A stretch of 64,000 nt of DNA from Vitrella brassicaformis CCMP3155 (lineage: Eukaryota; Protista; Chromerida), in assembly GCA_001179505.1 (NCBI GenBank), contig CDMY01000302.1, positions 1 through 64,000 of the forward strand, read 5' to 3'. Positions 1 through 53,103 of the stretch are shown one piece after another; the first letter of the stretch is position 1; each line of letters opens with the position of its first letter. The position numbers and the translations under genes were made by a program. The notes beneath the pieces were generated by a model. That model saw only the letters and a list, made by a program, of their open reading frames with translations. It ran no database searches and was not told where the DNA came from.

Positions 1-494
1 GAGTCCTTGATCTCGTCGCCGCCACAGAGACGCTCTCGCCGACCGTTGGATCACTCTCGCCGCTGAGTCCTCATTCATCTCCACCGGGGTCAACGCACAG
101 CCCACCCGAGGACGACGTTGAAATAAACGAATGAGATGTATATCTGTGCGCCTCGTCGGATAGCTGTGCGTTTGCGAGAGTGACGCACTCGGCCGACAAG
201 AGGGCGAGAGGAATCACTCGAGTCAGTCGTCCCTCTCGGCTGATGCGGTGAGATGGCGGGCCATTGAGTTGACAGCCAAACAGAGGTGAGGGAGGCCGAC
301 TACTCACTGACTGACTCACTCATGCGCTCACTGATCCATTGGCCTCAATGCGTTCGCCGTCCTTTTCCGTTGGCATCTCTCTCTCTGTGGCTGTCGGCCT
401 ATCGCTGCAGCCGTGTCGTTGAGGAGTGATGGCGGCCTCCTCATCTGCCGCTGCTGGTGGTGGTGGTGGTGCATTCAGTTCTCTGCATGCTGAT

Positions 495-592
495 CTGTCC
501 ATCTGAGCGTCGAACGAGGTGAGCACACAGATCAATGAGCAGCATGCTTGATGCACACGATCCTCTGTCGGCTCTGTCGCTCTGTGCAGGCT
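495..592 (+). promoter_or_regulatory. Shared 5' leader module, copy M1 (CATCTGAGC..AG|GTGAG..GCAGCATGCTTGA..TGTGCAG)
   Basis: Exon end gatctgtccatctgagcgtcgaacgag; donor GT at 519; intron motif gcagcatgcttga; acceptor at 589. The same motif set occurs at four other loci in the window. Confidence 0.65.
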
Positions 593-619
593 GTCGTCGA
601 GCACATCATAGCCACCCAG

Positions 620-2242
620 ATGCAGCCACCGCAACAGCAGCAGCAGCAGCATCCCTTCTCGTATATCTTCGTCGGCCGCCGCACCTTCTACCTCTTCAGC
701 AGCATCAAGGACATCCTGCGGCTGAGGGCCACCTGCACGTGGCTGAGAGGCCTCTTCAGAGCGGCCCAGCTGAGAGATCGGCTCCGCCACTCGCTGGGCT
801 CACAGGCGGGGCTGCGGCGGGCGGTGAATGGGCAGCAAGTGCAGCTGCTGCGGTTCGACGACGAGCAGTTCGGCACACATGATCTGCTGGCGGCTGTGTG
901 TGTGGTGGAGGAGGGGGGCTGGGACGAGATGGGCGAGGTGATTGAGGTGGCGGGGCAGTGCGGCAGCTGTGACCTGCCTGTCATCCTCACAGCCGATGAC
1001 ATCAACACACACGCAAACAAAACGGTGAGCCAGCAAAGAGAGGGGCGGGGAGGGGAGGGAGAGGGCCTCATTCTCTCTGTCTGTCTGTGTGTCTGTGTGT
1101 GGTCGTGTGTGTAGGCGTATGTGTCGGCTCCCCGTGTGTTGGCGCAGCTCAAGATGGTCGGCCACCACATCCACTTCAGTGACGACAGCTGCCTGCAGCT
1201 GTTCCAACACAATGGTGAGGTGCGGGCAATCATCGACGAGCCCGGCTTCCGGCTGGAGGTCGACCCGCCCCTCCCTGCCGGCCACCTGTACCAGCAGCAC
1301 CGACAGCCACACGACCCACCGGTGCGTGAGAGCATCTACTACTCGACCGCCAACGCCGGATGGGTGTCGATCCCTGGCGCGTACCCCCATGCGTCTGTGT
1401 CGTCGTTGGCCAAGTACATGGTCCTCCACCACTTCAGCGAGACTCACCAGACCAATGACACATCGATCACACTCAACAGGTAACACACCAACCACATGGC
1501 ACTGAAGGCAAGAGGGGAGCGCCGTTGATTGTGTGTGTGTCTGTGTTTTGTTCAGGGTTGTCGGTGGCGGTCGTCTGGGCGACCTGCTGACCGAGTCGCC
1601 CCATACACCAGTGGCCGGCTGCACCACGACACTCGGGCTGCACGGTGATGAGCGACGGCTGGTGCTGACCAACAGCAGTCATCCCTTCGTCGCATGGATT
1701 TGCATCACCAGATAAGCGAACAACACCGGTCAAAGTCACAGAGAGGGAGCTCTGCATGTCAATGTCATCAGTGTTCTCCGTCCCCTTGTGTGCAGTCTGG
1801 GTTAGTGTCTACACGACTGAGGCGGCTGTGTGTGGTAGTGGTGCCTTCAAGCACCGCTTCCCGGTGACCACTCAGCTGGCTCGTATGGTGTTGAGGGCGG
1901 TGGCGCCATACGTCTTCGACGGACAAGTACAGCAACAGCAGCAACAGCAGCAACAGCAGGATGATGACGACGGTACGGACACACACACACATGGATGGAT
2001 GGATGGATGGATGCCAGACGGGCGCTCTCTCTGTGTGGTCTGCAGATTCCGACGATGGCGATGAGGGTGACGATACGGATGAGGGCAGCGAAGAGGGCAG
2101 CGGAGGTACGAAGGAACGCACCACAGCACAGAGGCCCTCATGTCGACCTCCATCACATACATACATGTGTGTGTGTGTGTGTGTGTGTGTGGTGCCCTCG
2201 GCAGGTGACGGTGGCGAAGCTGAGGCGGAGAGCGGCGGTTGA
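620..2242 (+). CDS. Lineage-specific family A hypothetical protein, copy 1; in-frame TAA at 1713-1715 precedes three further in-phase exons (truncated or pseudogenised)
   Basis: Exons MQPPQQ..HPFSYIFVGRRTFYLF..HANKT | AYVSAPRVLAQLK..SITLNR | VVGGGRLGDLL..CITR*ANNT | VWVSVYTTE..DDD | DSDDG..GSG | GDGGEAEAESGG*, joined by GT-AG introns. Near-collinear paralog at 41940-43410. Confidence 0.7.
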
Positions 2243-27689: not shown

Positions 27690-28400
27690 CAGGTGGAAAG
27701 TGTTGCGCGTGACGCTCCAACTCTTGCTGCAGCATAGCATGCACAAGACACACACACACGCACACACACAGAGAGAGAGAGCGCTGAAGGCGGGCATGTG
27801 CGTCTTGTGTTCCTACAATGTGGGCGGGTGTGTGAAGCACCTGACCCCAACGCGCCACCACCACTGCAGGCACGATCCCCACCGCACACGCATATCCATC
27901 CACACAATCACCCAGCTCGTGTGTGTCCAACTCAGCTTACTCACTGCTGTGTATGTATGGGTATCCATAGAGCTCTGCAAACTTGTCTAAGGCGGCCTGC
28001 CGGCGGCGCATCTTCAACTCATCGCTGTCGTACTCGCCCATTGGATTACTGCATCAGGTCAGCGAAGGAGCCACACACACACACCCCGACACACAGAACA
28101 CCGCCATGCATTCTGTGGTCTGTGTATTCTTGCGTATCTTGATTGGCGTACTGTGGAATGACGGGTTCGATGCCGACGATGCGCGAGAGCGACATGTACA
28201 GCACCGGATCGACCAGCACTGAGTGCCACACCTCGTCGATGTGAGCCGGCACCGACAGGCGGCAGCTGCGGTCGTTCTCAACACCCTTCTGCACACACAC
28301 ATCACGGTAGCAAACAGACCATTTCTGCACACAAATGGGTGCAGGGCACTCACTAACAGCCCGACTGCCAACACCTCAGTGGCGACCTGACGCACACACA
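27690..28400 (-). CDS. GRDP/DUF1399-like (glycine-rich domain-containing protein family) hypothetical protein, partial model
   Basis: Spliced KGVENDRSCRLSVPAHIDEVWHSVLVDPVLYMSLSRIVGIEPVIPH|NPMGEYDSDELKMRRRQAALDKFAELYGYP resembles the P-x2-ID-x-VWH..P..Y..H-x-P motif. Both ends are unresolved. Confidence 0.55.
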
Positions 28401-29269
28401 GACACACAAATGCGCTCACGAAGGGCCCACAGGATACACGGCACTCATGCAGTCAGTGCCCCGATGGATGGCATGGCAGAGGTCACGTGGTGGTGCCCAG
28501 TGGCACCAGAGTGGTCGGCTGTTGTGTTGTGTTGGTCGGCTGTCTGTTGATTGGATGGGTCGCGAGACTCGTCAGGGGAGCGGCTCAGCGACATCGCCAT
28601 CCCTTCCTCTCTCTCTCTCTCTCTCTCCCTCGCCCATCAGTGGTCGCAGGGGGGACTTCTTGGCCTTCTTGGGCGATGACCAGCTGAGAGTGAGCTGCTT
28701 GATTCCGCGGCTGTCTGTCGCCTTGGCAATGCGGGCAGTCTGCATCAACAGCAAGTACACACACAACGACATGAGCACATGTTTGGTCTCGTGCATTCAA
28801 GTGTGTCGGCTGCTTTGCTGTGTGTACCTCCCTGCTGCGGTGTGGTGTAGCCGAGAGGGGGAGGTCACCACCTCGTGTGGGGTGGTGGTCCAGGTCCTGG
28901 GCTTCGTTTAGAGTGAGGAGGCCGCTGGCGAACGGACCGCTTCACCAGCTCCCGCGCTGTGCCGTCCGACTACTCGCACTGCTGGCGCACTTTCATCGGA
29001 CCAGATCACCCCGAGAGGAGTGGCCTGTGACTGGGCGGGTTCTGATCACCGCAGTCGTCTCGTGCGTCTGACCTCAAAGGTCGGGAGGGCAGGCGAAGTG
29101 GGTCAGAATGCCATCCGGCAGCATCTGGTGGTCCCCCTGTCACTCAACGCTCGATGTAATCGGGTCAGAATCACACGAGTTGTCTTCAATGCACTCGGCA
29201 ACGAGTGCCGAAAGAACGTTTCACGGCATTGCGAGCTCAAAGGTGAGGAAAGGCCCTGTGATCCAGATA

Positions 29270-29385
29270 CTCGCCATCTGAGCATCCAGGAAGGTGAGGA
29301 ACTCGAAGATCTCTAGGCAGCATGCTTGAGGATTCATCAGCTGTCGCTCTGCTCCCATTTCTGTGCAGCCCTTCAGTGAGGACCT
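29270..29385 (+). promoter_or_regulatory. Shared 5' leader module, copy M3
   Basis: catctgagcatccaggaag|gtgaggaactcgaag..ggcagcatgcttgaggattcatcagc..ctgtgcag|cccttcagtgaggacc. Confidence 0.65.
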
Positions 29386-29624
29386 CCGCTGCCGCCCGTC
29401 CACCAGCGTCAGGTACCGAGGCAGACCACACCGAACTGTGAGCCTCGCTGAGCTCGGTGTGTGTGCGTCAGATTGGTCGGTTTCGCCTCGGCTGTTCGCC
29501 CACCGCTCAAACAATCAGACTGGTGACCAACAAGTGACAGGTACGTCAGGGCCGAGAGAGGCGCGCGGCATCCAGTCACCACATTATGTGTGTGCCTGTG
29601 ACGCCGATGGTAGGCACAAAGACC

Positions 29625-41939: not shown

Positions 41940-43410
41940 TCAGCCGCCGCTCTCCGCCTCAGCTGCTCCACCCTCACCTGCCGAGGGCACAATACACACA
42001 CACACACACAACCATATGTGTGATGCAGATCGACGTGGGGGCCTCCGTGGTGTGTGTGACTGTGCCCTCCCTCTATCCATACCATCGTCACTGTCGTGAT
42101 CTTGCTGCTGATGCTGCTACTGTACTTGTCCGTCGAATACGAATGGCGCCACCGCCCTCAACGCCACGCGAGCCAGCTGAGTGGTCACCGGGAAGCGGTG
42201 CTTGAAGGCGCCACCCCCACACACAGCCGCCTCAGTGGTCTCGACACGCACATCCACTGCACACAAGGGGAAGAAGACCACGCGACATTGACGAGCAGAG
42301 CTCCCTCTCTGTCTCCCTTACCGTCGTTGTTTCCTGCTCCGCTGATGGAAATCGATGCGACGAAGGGGTGGCTGCTGTTGGTGAGCACCAGCCACCACTC
42401 ATCACCGTCCAGCCCCATTGTGGTCGTGCATCCGGCCATCGGTGTGTGAGGCGACTCGGTCAGCAGGCCATTTAGACGGCCGCCACCAACATACCTGAAC
42501 CAACCACAGCCATACACAGTCAACGGCGCACCTGGTATCTTTAGTGCCATTGATGTCTTGTCACCTGTTGAGTCTTATCGATGTGCGGTTGGTCTGGTGA
42601 GTCTCGCTGAAGTGGTCGAAGATCATGAACTTGGCAGACGACGACAGTGACGCATCGGTGAACAGGCCACCGTCCGACACCCATCCGCCGCCGTCCTCGG
42701 TCGAGTAGATGATGCCGCTGTTGGTCGCCGGTGGGTCGTATGGCTGTCGGTGCTGCCGATACAGGTGGCCGGCAGGGAGGGCCGGGTCGACCTCCAGCTC
42801 GAAGCCGGGCTGGTCCTTGATGGCCCGCATTCCACCGTTGCCGTGTTGGAACAGCTGCAGGCAGCTGCCGTCACTGAACTGGAAGTGGCGGCCGACCATC
42901 CTGAGCTGCGCCAACACACGGGGAGCCGAGACATACGCCTACACACACGACCACACACACACAGAGAATGAGGCCCTCTCCCTCCCCTCCCCGCCCCTCT
43001 GTTTGCTGGCTCACCGTTATGTTTGCGTGTGTGTTGATGTCAGCCCCACTCAGGGTCACAGGCAGGTCAAAGTTGCCGCACTGCCCCGCCAGCTCAATCA
43101 CCTCGGCCATCTCGCCCCAGGCCCCCTCCTCCACCACACACACAGCCGCCAGCACATCATGTGTGCCGAACTTGTCGTCGTCGAACCGCAGCAGCTGCAC
43201 TTGCTGCCCATTCACCGCCCGCCGCAGCCCCGCCTGTGAGTCCAGCGAGTGGCGGAGCCGATCTCTTAGCTGGGCCGCTCCGAAGAGCTCTCTGAGCCAG
43301 GTGCAGGTGGCCCTCAGCCGCAGGATGTCCTTGATGCTGCTGAAGAGGTAGAAGGTGCGGCAGCCGACGAAGATATACGAGAAGGGGTGCTGCCGCTGCG
43401 GTGGCTGCAT
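41940..43410 (-). CDS. Lineage-specific family A hypothetical protein, copy 2; TAG at 42117-42119 precedes a residual acidic tail exon
   Basis: Same exon series as copy 1 (MQPPQRQHPFSYIFVGCRTFYLF..; VDVRVETTEAAVCGGGAFKHRFP..DGQVQ*). The final exon GEGGAAEAESGG* ends at 41940. Confidence 0.75.
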
Positions 43411-43431: not shown

Positions 43432-43535
43432 GACGAGAGGCTGCACAGAGGGACAGAGCCGACAGGGGATCGTGTGCATCAAGCATGCTGCTCATTGATC
43501 TGTGTGCTCACCTCGTTCGATGCTCAGATGGACAG
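43432..43535 (-). promoter_or_regulatory. Shared 5' leader module, copy M2
   Basis: Reverse complement reads gatctgtccatctgagcatcgaacgag|gtgagcacacagatcaatgagcagcatgcttga..tctgtgcag. Confidence 0.65.
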
Positions 43536-45938
43536 ATCAGCAGGCAGAGAACGGAAAAAAGCACCACCACCACCACCACCACCTCCAGCACCACTGGCAG
43601 ATGAGGAGGCCGCCATCACTCCTCAACGACAAGCCTGCAGCGATGGGCCGACAAGTACAGAGAGAGAGAAATGCCAACAGAAAAGGACGGCGAGCGCATT
43701 GAGGCCAATGGATTAGTGAGCGCATCAGTGAGTCCGTCAGTGAGTGGTCGGCCTCCCTCACCTCTGTTTGGCTGTCAGCTCAATGGCCCGCTTCCACCGG
43801 GAGGATGATTCGAGTGATTCCCTTCGGCCGCTTTCTCGGCCGAGTGCGTCACTCTCGCAACGCCCAGCTATCCGACAAGGCACAAACGCCACAGCGCACC
43901 TCTCACGCGTGGGGCTAAAGGGTAATCAACCCTTTGACCCGAACCCTGCTGCTGCGTGAAACACAAATTTTGAGCCTGCAGATCTTTCGCCTTTTTCCCT
44001 AACCTGCCCTCCCTCTTGGGCATGGCAGAGGCGGCGGAAGGCGTCCGCGCGCGTCGTCTGACTCGCTCCCCTCCCTGCCCCTTCTCCTGCCAGCCGGCGG
44101 ACGTCGGCCGTTGACAGGTACGGGCGGCAACAGAGAAGCTCACAGGCAGCAGAAACCACACACGACGTATTGCATGTGACAGAGAGGAAGATGCGCAGAT
44201 ATCAAGGCAGGATGCAGACGAGCACGCGTGTGTCTGGTGTGTGTTTCCTGCAGGCGTCGCGAGATCAGCACCGGACGAACTGTGTGGACGCTCGGCGGTG
44301 CTCATGGCGTGACTTCGAGCCACTCCTCCGCTTCTTTCTCTCACTTGGTGTCTCACTGAGGCCTGCATGCGGCGGGGCGACTCGTCAACTCTCCCTCCAC
44401 TCGACCACCTGACGCTTCAACACACTGACGACAGCACCCACCCACTAGCGGCTGGCGGCTCAAGACAATCCCACTCGCTACAGACCAGTGTCCTGCCAAC
44501 ACGCACCTCTCATCCCTCGTCTGTGCCCAGCCGACGGCCAGACGCCCCCGTCTGATGACCTCCCACATGCCCCTCTGGATATCGGTGGCTGACGGGCTGT
44601 GAGCGGGTCGACGCTGCAAGGAGGCATTGGGGCAGACGCATGCCCTCTCGCTAATGGGCCATGTGGCTGCCGGATGTCTATTTGTAGGTCAGTGAGGGGG
44701 GGGGGGAGGGCTGCACACACACACACACACGCCTGCAGAGACAAACGCACTGCTTTGCTGTGTTTTTACTTCATCAGCGCCGACCCGCTCACTGGCCGTC
44801 CCACCGACGCGCATACACACAAGACGACAGATGACCGGCCGCTCTTCGGGATGGATCGGCGGTCTGGTGGGCAGCTGTGAGGTTACTGCGGGGGCCGAGG
44901 ATGTCGGCAAGGCGGCTCGGCTGGGGGATGATGACTGGTGAAAGAGGTGGATGGATGCGGTGTTGCGGCGGCCCGGTCCAAAGCAGCCAATGAGAGTGTA
45001 TGTGAGTGCTGTCAGTGTGGTGCCTGTGGAGGTGTCGTGTGTGGTCGTGTTGGAGGGGTACAGGTACGGTTTATCCCGGCGTGTGTCGGGCCTGTCTCTG
45101 TGTAGCCATCCAGGCAACCAGCTGATGTATATGCTCTGGCCATCTGACCTCCTCTCTCTCCCTCGGCTGTGGATACTTCTGCTCACGTCGTGTATGCGGT
45201 GTTTTGTGCTTCGTGGTGTATGTGTGTGTGTGTTTGGCTTCGGAATCCTGCTGCTCAGACAGCGAAAGCGAAACCGGCGGCTCGCATTAGCTTTCGCTTG
45301 ATCTCTAGGATTGCGAAGCGAAGCATACACATACGGCCCCACATTCTTCATTCCTTTCTTCTGATGGATAATCTGTTTATGTGGTTGGGTCAGTCTCTCG
45401 TTGGCTCATCCGTATGGACACGCGTACGTGGCTGACGACGGAAAGGGCGACGGTCTCTTTGCAGCTGACCGACGTCCTTTTCGGTCTCGTCCCGGTACGC
45501 TTGTCCACGGGTGAGGCAACAGAGAGAAGACACGTCATCGCTTCTCATCTGTGTGGTCCCTGGCATATGTGTGTGTATCATATGGACGACACTTATGTGC
45601 CCTCTCACTCACATCAATTTGAGATGCGATGGGACATCGATGGGTCATTGGCATCATGATGTTGAGATGATGCATGGGATACGACGATAATCAACAAGAG
45701 ACAGAGTGGATGCTCTCTTAGTGGGCGATTAAGTGAATCGCAACAGAAGCGAGTCTCGGTACAAGCCATCATCCGTCAATCAGACATCCATAGAAATGTG
45801 TTCACCGCCTATATCGCATGCAGTCGTCTCAACCGCCCGACAGCAACACGCCAAGAGAGCCTCAAAACAGACGCATGTAGAAACACACGGCGGTTCTAAT
45901 GCAGGAAGGCATTGAGGCATCGGTAGGTCAAGTGTCTT

Positions 45939-50638: not shown

Positions 50639-51610
50639 TCACTGTTGAGATGATGCTTCCTCCTCCTCCTCCTCCTTCTGGCGCCTCAGAAAATTATACT
50701 CTTCCGCGACGTTCTTTAGCAGCATTATCTGGTTGAACAAGCGGCGGTTGTCCTGGAAGTTCTCCCATTGCTCCTTGGCCACTCCCTCTGCAGCGCACAT
50801 GCACACACAAAGACAGACAAAGGCACCCATGTGGCACTCTGTCGTCGTGTGTGCGCATTTCTCTGTCTGTGCAGGTGCTTGTGTGTGTCGTTCTCCCTCC
50901 CTCCCTCCCTCCCTCCCTGCCTCTCTGTGTGTGTGAGGTGCATGCGTACCAGGGCGCGGTGCGGAGAAGGGTGCTTGGTACAGCGTATTGAGTTGCTGAT
51001 TGGTGGACAGAATGCGCTGCATGAGGAATTTGCGAGTGTCGGGATCCTTCTCCTGCTCGAGCTGCTGCTGTACTTCTGCCTTTTCCTGCTCGACTTTTGC
51101 CCGTTCCTGCTCCAGCGCCGCCTGCGCTTCCCGAAGCTCCTTGATGAGCTGATCCTCAGGCTGCTTACGCGCGAGATCGATCTGCTGCTCCAGTTCTGCC
51201 CTCTCCTGCTCGAGTGCCGCCAGAAGCTCCTTGATGAGACTGTCCAGCTCGGCAGGGGTGGTGGTACCGGCGTCATTGGTCACCTGCACCCACCACACAC
51301 ACAGTCAGGTGCCTGCGTCAGTCATCGGTCGCCTGGCCTCCCTCTCCCACCGACCCACCATGAGTGCAGTGGAGCCACGGAGCCGCCGGCGTCGATGGGG
51401 AGTGGACGAAGATGACTGCACCACGACGGTAGGCAGAGGCAGGGCGGCCATCCACTCAGTCGGCTCGGCTCGCCGCACGTCCAGCTGCTGCTGCTGGCCA
51501 CCAGAGTGGGCACCCACATGCCGCAGGTGGCGAACGGCATGGCCCAGGGGAGGCACGAATGCGACGACGGCAGTGGCCCATTCTCCCAGTAGCACCAGCA
51601 ACAGGAGCAT
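50639..51610 (-). CDS. Putative plastid-targeted coiled-coil protein, family B copy 2 (single chimeric module, intact frame)
   Basis: MLLLLVLLGEWATAVVA-FVPP..STALM | VTNDAGTTTPAELDSLIKEL..KQPEDQLIKELREAQAALEQE..LYQAPFSAPRP | EGVAKEQW..ASSQQ*. Confidence 0.75.
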
Positions 51611-51869
51611 GGTCTATGCGCCTGCAATTAGCGTCACACAGACACACACATAATGTGGTGACTGGATGCCTCGCGCCCCTCTCACCCCTGACATTCCTGT
51701 CACTTGTGAGTCACCAGTCTGATTGTTTGAGTGGCGGGCGAACAGCCTAGGCGAAACAGACCAATCTGACGCTCACACACCGATGTCAGCGAGGCTCACA
51801 GTTCGGTGTGGTCTGCCTCGGTACCTGACGCTGGTGGACGGGCGGCAGCGGAGGTCCTCACTGAAGGGC

Positions 51870-51970
51870 TGCACAGAAATGGGAGCAGAGCGACAGCTGA
51901 TGAATCCTCAAGCATGCTGCCTAGAGATTTTCGAGTTCCTCACCTTCCTGGATGCTCAGATCGGCAGGAT
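51870..51970 (-). promoter_or_regulatory. Shared 5' leader module, copy M4
   Basis: Reverse complement reads gatctgagcatccaggaag|gtgaggaactcgaaaatctctaggcagcatgcttgagg..ctgtgcag; almost identical to M3. Confidence 0.65.
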
Positions 51971-52214
51971 CCGCAGATCACCGCGCCTTTCCTCACATTT
52001 CAGCTCGCAATGGATCGCCGCGCCTTAATTTCAGCACGATGGCTGAGCGTCCTTTGCGTGTGGCGCCTCTCGGCCATGACCTGCCAGAGGTAAGACCAGC
52101 CAGAAACGCACTCATCATCACAGTGGGGAGTTGAGCAGCCGACGCGGGATGAGGCCTTTCTGTGTGTGCAATTTGCGTGTTCATGTCCTTTGATCAGTAG
52201 CTTCGCTGATCTGC

Positions 52215-52340
52215 TTGTTGATCTGTCCATCTGAGCATCTGTGAAGGTGAGGGACTCGAAGTTCTGCAGGCAGCATGCTTGAGGAATCATCAGCTATCGC
52301 TCTGCTGCTGTTCTATGCAGCATCTCCAGTGAGGACCCTC
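52215..52340 (+). promoter_or_regulatory. Shared 5' leader module, copy M5, upstream of the BTB relic
   Basis: gatctgtccatctgagcatctgtgaag|gtgagggactcgaag..ggcagcatgcttgaggaatcatcagc..ctatgcag|catctccagtgaggacc. Confidence 0.65.
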
Positions 52341-52440
52341 TGGCCCACTTGGCCCATCCATCGTGGGCCAGGTGGGATTTCACCCAGATTCAGGTGTGCC
52401 TCTATAGTCTGTCGTGCTGCAGGTGTGCGTGCGTGTCGCA

Positions 52441-53103
52441 ATGACGACTCCCATTCGACTTGATGTCGGCGGCAAGATGTTCCACGTGGCCAGGACGACC
52501 ATCGAGCGGCACCCACAGACATTGTCGGGCCAGCTGGTCGCCAATGAGAACTCTGCCGAGTCATCTGTCACCGTAGAGGACTCATCGGTCTGGCAGGGTC
52601 TGACCGAGTACAACGCGTCCAAGAAAGGCCTCAAACGAATCGCAACGGCGAGCAAGTGGGTGCTCAGGGTGAGAGCATGGAGGTCGACGACGAAACGCCC
52701 GCTGTGATCATGAAGAACACCAAGCCCGCGCCAAAGCTACACACGCACGAGCCTGGTGTGACAGAGTGACACGACATGATTCACTTCACATTGGCTGGTG
52801 TCTCTCCGCCAGTTTCTGACTTCTGCAGTGCAGAGATGGCCAAGTTCAGCCGCTCCCGGCTCCTCATCCCAGAGGACCTTCTCTTCTGTCTCTGTGGTAG
52901 GGCAGCCACCGCTGCATGAGTCACACACTCCTGCATTCGCTTGTGATTGACAGTGTTTCACTACAAGCGCCAGACAGATGAGAAGAAACTGCAGCTGGCC
53001 AAGCAGGTGGCGCATGTGAATGTGAACGCGTCAGTCAATGATTGTTTGTGTGCTTTCACAGCAAGCTGAGAACGGCTGTCCGGCGGCCATGTTATGTACA
53101 TAA
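52441..53103 (+). pseudogene. Degenerate BTB/POZ (KCTD/T1-type) domain gene
   Basis: MTTPIRLDVGGKMFHVARTTIERHPQTL matches the BTB_2 N-terminus, but the DRDP core is absent. Later exons (SDFCSAEMAK.., VFHYKRQTDEKKLQLAKQ, QAENG..*) are phase-consistent with each other but not with exon 1. Confidence 0.5.

Follow-up and report, generated by a model that had tools for sequence, protein, structure and literature searches.

The window analysed here is a stretch of 64,000 nucleotides of the Vitrella brassicaformis CCMP3155 genome (contig CDMY01000302.1, positions 1 to 64,000 of the forward strand). It contains five copies, M1 to M5, of a short leader module, whose coordinates are given in Table 1 together with those of the neighbouring features. 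On alignment of the copies, the module consists of an exon tail of about 30 nt, a GT donor and an intron of 71–77 nt, the whole unit being about 110 bases long. The consensus of the tail is CTGATCTGTCCATCTGAGCATC plus 7 nt ending in AG, and the intron carries an invariant block, GCAGCATGCTTGA, a CT-rich 3′ tract and a TGTGCAG acceptor. The donor GT and the acceptor CAG are invariant in an alignment of 29 copies. No frame is open from upstream across the spliced junction of M1, and the module is therefore a 5′UTR exon followed by a 5′UTR intron. All five copies were found where the original prediction had placed them, each upstream of a coding region in the same orientation, and a profile of the leader matches exactly these five within the window.

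Table 1. Leader copies M1 to M5 and associated features in the window.
Feature	Position	Strand	Details
uORF of family A, MAASSSAAAGGGGGAFSSLHADLSI and stop	429..506	+	stop codon inside the M1 leader tail
M1 leader exon tail, A-type	489..518	+	last ~30 nt of non-coding exon 1
M1 leader intron	519..589	+	71 nt; GTGAG...GCAGCATGCTTGA...TGTGCAG; donor G at 519
M1 exon 2	590..1036	+	30 nt of 5′UTR, then first coding exon of family A, ATG at 620
Family A exons	620-1036; 43003-43410		first coding exon of the M1 and M3 genes
Gene Y copy	27801..28339	-	head-to-head with M2/family B gene
M2 leader, B-type	29227..29412	+	exon 1 region from about -67; intron 29294-29368 (donor G at 29294); short non-coding exon 2 29369-29412; second donor at 29413, after exon 2; family B ORF start at 29586
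Donor-like AAGGTGAGGAA, two copies	29240-29250; 29291-29301		at the M2 leader
M3 leader, A-type	43441..43540	-	tail 43540-43512; intron 43511-43441 (donor G at 43511); family A paralog ATG at 43410
M4 leader, B-type	51825..51973	-	tail 51973-51944; intron 51943-51869 (donor G at 51943); exon 2 51868-51825; before family B paralog B2
Gene Y remnant first exon	52039..52089	+	MAERPLRVAPLGHDLPE, then GTAAGA; between M4 and M5
M5 leader, B-type intron with A-like exon tail	52217..52440	+	tail 52217-52246; intron 52247-52320 (donor G at 52247); exon 2 52321-52371; intron 2 52372-52422; 5′UTR after intron 2 runs to BTB_2 ATG at 52441
BTB_2 first coding exon behind M5	52441-52596	+	intact

The five copies are not five independent cases. 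Both flanks of M3 align with the sequence upstream and downstream of M1, and because the flanks align on both sides within each pair, M1/M3 and M2/M4 are whole-gene duplicates. The window thus offers three contexts, namely family A, family B and a BTB gene. M5 does bridge the two leader types as had been proposed, but the copies had been mislabelled: it is the exon tail of M5 that matches M1/M3, and its intron that matches M2/M4. The leader at C562:28403(-) is 94% identical to that of M5. No match to the second BTB exon of the paralogs on contigs C658 and C562 was found within the window, which is consistent with the earlier description of the gene behind M5 as a relic, in this case a truncated one.

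Some variation is seen around the splice sites. B-type leaders have a second copy of the donor-like word AAGGTGAGGAA, placed 51 nt before the real donor, and a related word stands at the same place in M4, in the copy before a cysteine-synthase-family gene and in C617_21866. The duplicated word could serve as an alternative donor, or could have been left behind by a tandem duplication. Otherwise intact leaders have the donor GTCAGG at C562:28403(-) (L002) and GTAAGC at C802:2538(+) (L078), and one (L020, C374:91093-) has the acceptor context TGTCCAG.

The distribution of the leader was analysed in the whole genome (72.7 Mb in 1064 contigs), using a sequence-only profile (R1) built from 29 copies, with the best 150 candidates scored. 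At least 54 copies were found at E<1e-7, and reversed-pattern controls gave no matches. Simple patterns gave a similar picture. The pattern ATCTGAGCRTC-N3-9-GGTGAG matches 20 times in the genome, and GGTGAG-N10-35-GCAGCATGCTTGA matches 32 times, with no match of either in the reversed control. The 13-mer GCAGCATGCTTGA alone has 34 matches (none in the control), all except one inside leader copies. The arrangement in the window is thus far beyond chance. A reading of the conserved words as general cis-motifs was rejected, as neither of the two invariant cores occurs to any real extent outside leader copies. Many copies are clustered on a few contigs (C302, C351, C617 and C409), and the profile census contains no tandem arrays of the leader. 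In metagenome contigs there was no match to the exact leader-tail pattern, and a search with the trypsin relative gave no related loci.

The genes behind the copies were classified by translated comparison and Pfam for the 46 copies with flanks of ±1.5 kb, and five further copies were placed by their coordinates directly upstream of a family A first exon. The 46 flank-bearing copies comprise 36 family A genes or fragments, three family B genes, three BTB_2 genes, one trypsin-like gene, one cysteine-synthase-family gene and two unknown ORFs. The tally of the 54 is therefore 41 in family A, 10 before other genes of at least six types, and three unclassified, at C303:41656, C351:78600 and C341:48619; several weak partial matches are likewise unclassified. 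Each of the 46 flank-bearing copies is followed on its own strand by an ORF or a piece of one, so that their orientation to genes is uniform and not random. All classified copies are in 5′UTRs, and none is free-standing or in a coding exon. The copies outside family A are all correctly oriented, and lie 30–250 nt before the start of an intact ORF.

Pfam names three of the recipients (BTB_2, Trypsin and PALP), and gave no match for families A and B. No significant protein similarity was found between the downstream proteins of different families. Family B proteins have a signal-peptide-like N-terminus and are coiled-coil-like. The trypsin-like serine protease (PF00089, 36.9 bits), at L017:1658-2899 (+) on contig C310, has a leader of the A′ subtype. 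MMETSP contains a complete transcript ORF that is 97% identical to it, departing from the genomic frame after ..DPFPE, where a 3′ intron is spliced; the gene is thus expressed from the predicted ATG, this evidence covering the coding part only. The cysteine-synthase-family gene encodes a PLP enzyme with PALP matches on two exons, gene models having been searched exon by exon. Its first exon aligns to residues 1–40 of solved cysteine synthases and O-ureido-L-serine synthase. The original prediction was that the module seeds expression of new lineage-specific genes, and this is only half right: such genes are among the recipients, and so are a conserved cysteine-synthase-family enzyme and a trypsin-like protease.

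Family A is very large. Of 325 candidates, at least 150 match its first exon, the most distant of them at about 45% identity. The leader is found only with the clade that is about 72% or more identical to the window copy, members at or below 70% having no leader match among the best 150 candidates. An F-box identity for family A is a weak lead: there is no Pfam domain, and the match to F-box clusters in the Atlas (0.83–0.89) is below the reliable range. About 25 of the 36 family A copies (L014, L021 and L046 being examples) have a uORF of 21–33 codons, whose stop is invariably a TGA, at -12 in A-type and at -25 in A′-type copies. It has the pattern MAASSSAAA, a Gly/Ala run and AFSSL.ADLS[IV] before the stop, and is absent from all copies outside family A. 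The length variation of the uORF is in-frame but falls within a GGT repeat, and the frame-keeping may be mechanical.

Several family A copies are rearranged. One (L045, C391:48093+) has a 1.26-kb insertion at +106, and in another (L051, C602:20677+) 400 nt are inserted at +296, part of which repeats the upstream region of this same copy. In three further copies, the leader intron has been kept and the leader exon exchanged for unrelated sequence, homology starting at -2 in L055 (C658:272+), at -17 in L038 (C302:119273-) and at -14 in L050 (C571:266789-). To judge from these three, first-exon replacement occurs in the opposite direction too.

One account of these numbers would be that every copy was inherited with its gene, and that the apparently unrelated genes are co-descended or have been mis-called. 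Family A copies are homologous over a stretch that begins at about -450 and continues past +1500, each of the pairs M1/M3 and M2/M4 arose by plain gene duplication, and about three quarters of the copies (41/54, 76%) are evidently explained by the expansion of family A, which is ordinary paralogy. As a complete explanation, however, paralogy is refuted, and we regard it as highly improbable that the remaining copies are also of this kind. The recipients have distinct Pfam folds (BTB_2, Trypsin and PALP) with no similarity between families, and their own paralogs mostly have no leader among the best 150 candidates. No match was found near a trypsin paralog at C310:122188 that is 83% identical and 58 kb away on the same contig, and only one of at least five trypsin paralogs has a leader. 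Within about 19 BTB_2 genes, the leader is found only in the C658/C562/M5 clade, with no match near the other 16 or so. A fourth copy of family B, at C302:71532, has no match either.

The phylogeny of the leader is likewise incongruent with the gene families. The leader tree has two clades with 100/100 support, which are about 70% identical to each other and retain the same invariant blocks. The B-type clade contains leaders of five gene types. The A-type clade contains 36 family A leaders, the trypsin leader, which is nested within A′ (branch length 0.0099), and one of the BTB leaders, so that the BTB leaders are divided between the two deep clades. The three BTB paralogs share a sequence that begins about 40 nt ahead of the ATG and continues downstream, and differ in their leaders: M5 and the C562 gene have a B-type leader, and C658_19598, with a gene body 89% identical to that of M5, has an A′-type core (91–96% over -32..+77). 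The leader is evidently not ancestral to the recipient families. Unrelated genes behind it, a tree incongruent with gene family and paralogs without a match together bear out the description of the module as portable, and shared gene ancestry alone fails to explain the matches.

The extent of the transferred pieces can be read from the positions at which homology ends. Between A and B leaders, the 5′ edge is at -20/-33 and the 3′ edge at +72/+77. C658_19598 is homologous to A′ from -32 to +77/+80, M5 to B from -24 to +91 and to A′ from -28 to +116, and the cysteine-synthase-family copy to B1 from -58 to +105. The trypsin copy matches A′ from -97 to +129, the position of the A′ start codon, and the longest block, between UNK617 and the cysteine-synthase-family copy, runs from about -1340 to +80. 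Overall, the 5′ edges lie at -15, -28/-33, -58, -97, -182 and about -1340. These positions form a nested series about the core, and change from one independent context to the next. The 3′ edges (+72 to +129) all fall between the acceptor (+71/+77) and the ATG of the donor gene (about +101 to +125). We infer that this confinement is the result of selection, because only such fusions would give an intact foreign ORF together with a still-spliceable leader.

The long common blocks contain a divergently transcribed cellular gene, here called Y. The block at 52039-52089 is common to the cysteine-synthase-family locus, the C617 locus and two family A loci, and at these four loci it forms the first exon of a gene that runs in the direction leading away from the leader. 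Y is a small multi-copy gene (about 8–10 copies), and is head-to-head with the leader at five loci at least (the window, L003, L007, L041 and L042). The genes on the other side of the leader at Y loci are family B in the window, the cysteine-synthase-family gene, UNK617 and two of family A. In the window, the Y copy is separated from the M2 leader by about 900 nt that are absent from the other Y-leader loci. At one locus, an ORF with a ubiquitin-like domain lies beyond Y (L007:2610-2903). The possibility that Y is a transposase was rejected, since Pfam gives only this downstream ubiquitin-like domain.

It had also been proposed that the module is the end of an unrecognised non-autonomous element, and a MITE, a Helitron-like or an introner-like element carrying a promoter, first exon and intron would indeed be a short, dispersed, multi-copy unit before unrelated genes, as is seen here. 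We consider a mobile element very unlikely. Its copies should have common termini, but the edges vary on both sides (from -15 to about -1340 at the 5′ end and from +72 to +129 at the 3′ end). No shared ends, inverted terminal repeats or conserved hairpin were found, copy alignments contain no common junction sequence, and there are no flanking direct repeats at M1, M2 and M5. The original statement that no TIR or TSD is present holds at these three copies, their flanks included. Insertion in both orientations or at varied kinds of site was not seen in the 46 flank-bearing copies, and the classified copies are confined to 5′UTRs in gene orientation. In addition, 76% of the copies are explained by one gene family, and the larger common blocks hold a cellular gene, Y, and no transposon genes. 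Introner-like elements are intron-generating transposons, described for instance in the dinoflagellate Amoebophrya (PMC7789003). They resemble the leader in being near-identical short introns at many loci of an alveolate genome. Introners differ in having defined ends with direct or inverted repeats, in lying within genes including their coding sequence, and in numbering hundreds to thousands. The Vitrella unit has no defined ends, always comes with an upstream exon tail, is found only in the 5′UTR and has about 54 copies.

Nor is there support for a structured RNA. RNAalifold gave -5.3 kcal/mol and no compensatory pairs for 29 copies, and a search of Rfam with positions 51600–52600 returned only sub-threshold matches at chance level. 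An intron-encoded small RNA (snoRNA or miRNA) was rejected, as there is no covariation and no Rfam family. The words upstream of M4 that resemble C and D boxes were also discarded, being the antisense of the protein-coding first exon of gene Y.

It is worth considering in this connection whether the leader could be a relic or cis derivative of a myzozoan spliced leader (SL) RNA gene, or could itself be trans-spliced. The SL of perkinsids and dinoflagellates is 21–22 nt long and ends in ..CCATCT(T)GGCTCAAG followed by GT (PMC3101222). In those lineages unrelated mRNAs begin with one short non-coding sequence that ends in AG|GT, as would those behind the leader here, and the Vitrella tail, CCATCTGAGCATC..AAG|GT, contains the letters of the known SL end in order. 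The alignment score of the tail with PmaSL2 is reached by only 1–19 of 436 control AG|GT sites. However, the best p value (0.002) is uncorrected and belongs to a minor variant, p is 0.03–0.10 for PmaSL1 and 0.3–0.76 for DinoSL, and the resemblance is not significant after correction. The candidate Sm motif in the leader is interrupted. No free-standing form of an SL RNA gene was found: every copy has a CAG acceptor 71–77 nt after the donor, followed by a gene. The Vitrella leader is thus cis-encoded before each gene with its own acceptor, unlike the SL of PMC3101222, and its most conserved part is the 3′ half of the intron with the acceptor (0.95), which fits cis-splicing and not an SL RNA. 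The literature searched contains no report of SL in chromerids, and for Vitrella it does not treat spliced leaders, introners or the structure of promoters. Taken together, an SL origin is exceedingly improbable.

The conservation of the core was measured as mean pairwise identity in 28 family A paralogs. The leader tail has an identity of 0.91 and the leader intron 0.93, rising to 0.95 in its 3′ part including the acceptor. In the coding sequence, codon positions 1 and 2 are at 0.91 and position 3 is at 0.87, and intron 2 is at 0.86. Identity falls to 0.79 in the rest of the 5′UTR (the exon 2 UTR) and to 0.73 in the upstream region. Between the A and A′ subtypes, identity is 0.89–0.90 in the core, 0.83 at position 3, 0.63 in the exon 2 UTR and 0.66 upstream. 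This elevated conservation indicates that the core is under selection or local homogenisation. The excess over synonymous sites is modest (0.92 vs 0.87), and concerted evolution without function could yield the same.

The main rival explanation is that the copies are a neutral by-product. Randomly scattered 5′ fragments of family A in an unstable, duplication-prone part of the genome, with a core kept similar by recent copying or gene conversion, would then have no regulatory role. Fragments of family A do exist in many sizes (C571 covers -14..+401 and C840 -444..+247, and C391_48093 and C602_20677 contain insertions), the copies crowd on the few contigs named above, and the excess of conservation over codon position 3 is small. 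Neutral scatter would not, however, be expected to place every copy outside family A in the correct orientation, 30–250 nt before an intact ORF start, or to leave the GT and CAG invariant in 29 copies. The two leader clades are also old, at about 70% identity, and have the same invariant blocks, and between subtypes the flanks (0.63 and 0.66) have decayed much faster than the core (0.89–0.90). Neutral scatter with concerted evolution is for these reasons rather unlikely.

On the basis of these observations, we hypothesise that the module is a promoter-proximal leader and intron cassette native to family A, which other genes have acquired by segmental duplication or ectopic recombination and have since kept; this is probably the correct explanation. 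The core would comprise the last 30 nt or so of non-coding exon 1 and a GT-AG intron of 71–77 nt. Many copies would also take in some tens of bases of the non-coding exon that follows. The leader would be native to one clade of family A, a very large, Vitrella-specific family, and would have multiplied with it. Pieces of variable size, the shortest about 110 nt long and the longest, with the whole bidirectional intergenic region, over 1.5 kb, would have been copied repeatedly at the DNA level to positions before unrelated genes. Viable products would be those with a 3′ breakpoint after the acceptor and before the start codon of the donor gene, and their core would then be kept by selection or local homogenisation. 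Retention would most likely be due to cis-regulatory information in the exon tail and intron. Candidate signals are start-proximal promoter elements, and/or an intron enhancer or splicing-control element near GCAGCATGCTTGA and the CT-rich 3′ tract. In C658_19598 the transferred piece is the smallest (-32..+80) and would bring no upstream promoter with it, and here the promoter would have to be inside the core, or that of the recipient would be used.

A bolder version of this proposal is that the leader is a self-sufficient regulatory cassette, made up of a promoter element, a mini-exon and an intron control element, that recruits any gene into a co-regulated set. The set would include the F-box-like family, secreted coiled-coil proteins, BTB, a protease and a cysteine-synthase-type enzyme. 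The leader would then be a cis-encoded functional analogue, and possibly an evolutionary relative, of the common leader added by trans-splicing in the related dinoflagellates and perkinsids. We regard this version as improbable.

The capture of leader and intron by segmental duplication can be compared with known systems. It has much in common with promoter and 5′UTR capture by segmental duplication, in which the breakpoints are variable, upstream DNA is carried over into the 5′UTR and the transferred piece stops before or at the donor start codon. The recipient ORFs are unrelated, and the process is local and driven by recombination. Two features set the Vitrella case apart. The same core has been reused, with at least 10 non-native placements and two diverged leader lineages, and what is kept is a tiny exon tail with a complete intron, and the repeated reuse gives it the look of a cassette and not of a one-off chimera. 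In Plasmodium var genes, the ups regions and a conserved intron are highly similar across dozens of paralogs and are tied to family-wide regulation, the similarity being probably due to selection and gene conversion. The var leaders are confined to one family, whereas the Vitrella leader is also found before BTB, protease, PLP-enzyme and other genes. Intron-mediated enhancement, in which 5′UTR introns are regulatory, is known from plants and from intron 1 of Chlamydomonas RBCS2. The likeness is in a promoter-proximal first intron that is conserved beyond the splice signals and is portable between genes, the activity of the Vitrella intron being putative. We know of no description, in the plant and Chlamydomonas systems, of the natural spread of one enhancing intron to unrelated genes.

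The borrowing of 5′ ends is of a known general kind, and Vitrella provides an unusually clear and repeated case of it, with a putative function. It is a natural example of genes gaining new 5′ ends, one unit from two old lineages having been reused at least 10 times outside its home family, and the breakpoints point to the filter that would make such fusions viable. There is also a warning for annotation, in that near-identical 5′UTR introns in Vitrella need not signal transposons or membership of a gene family. If the core is regulatory, it would be the first defined portable promoter/leader element for chromerids, and could provide expression tools in a group without established genetics. 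It would also define a candidate set of co-regulated genes.
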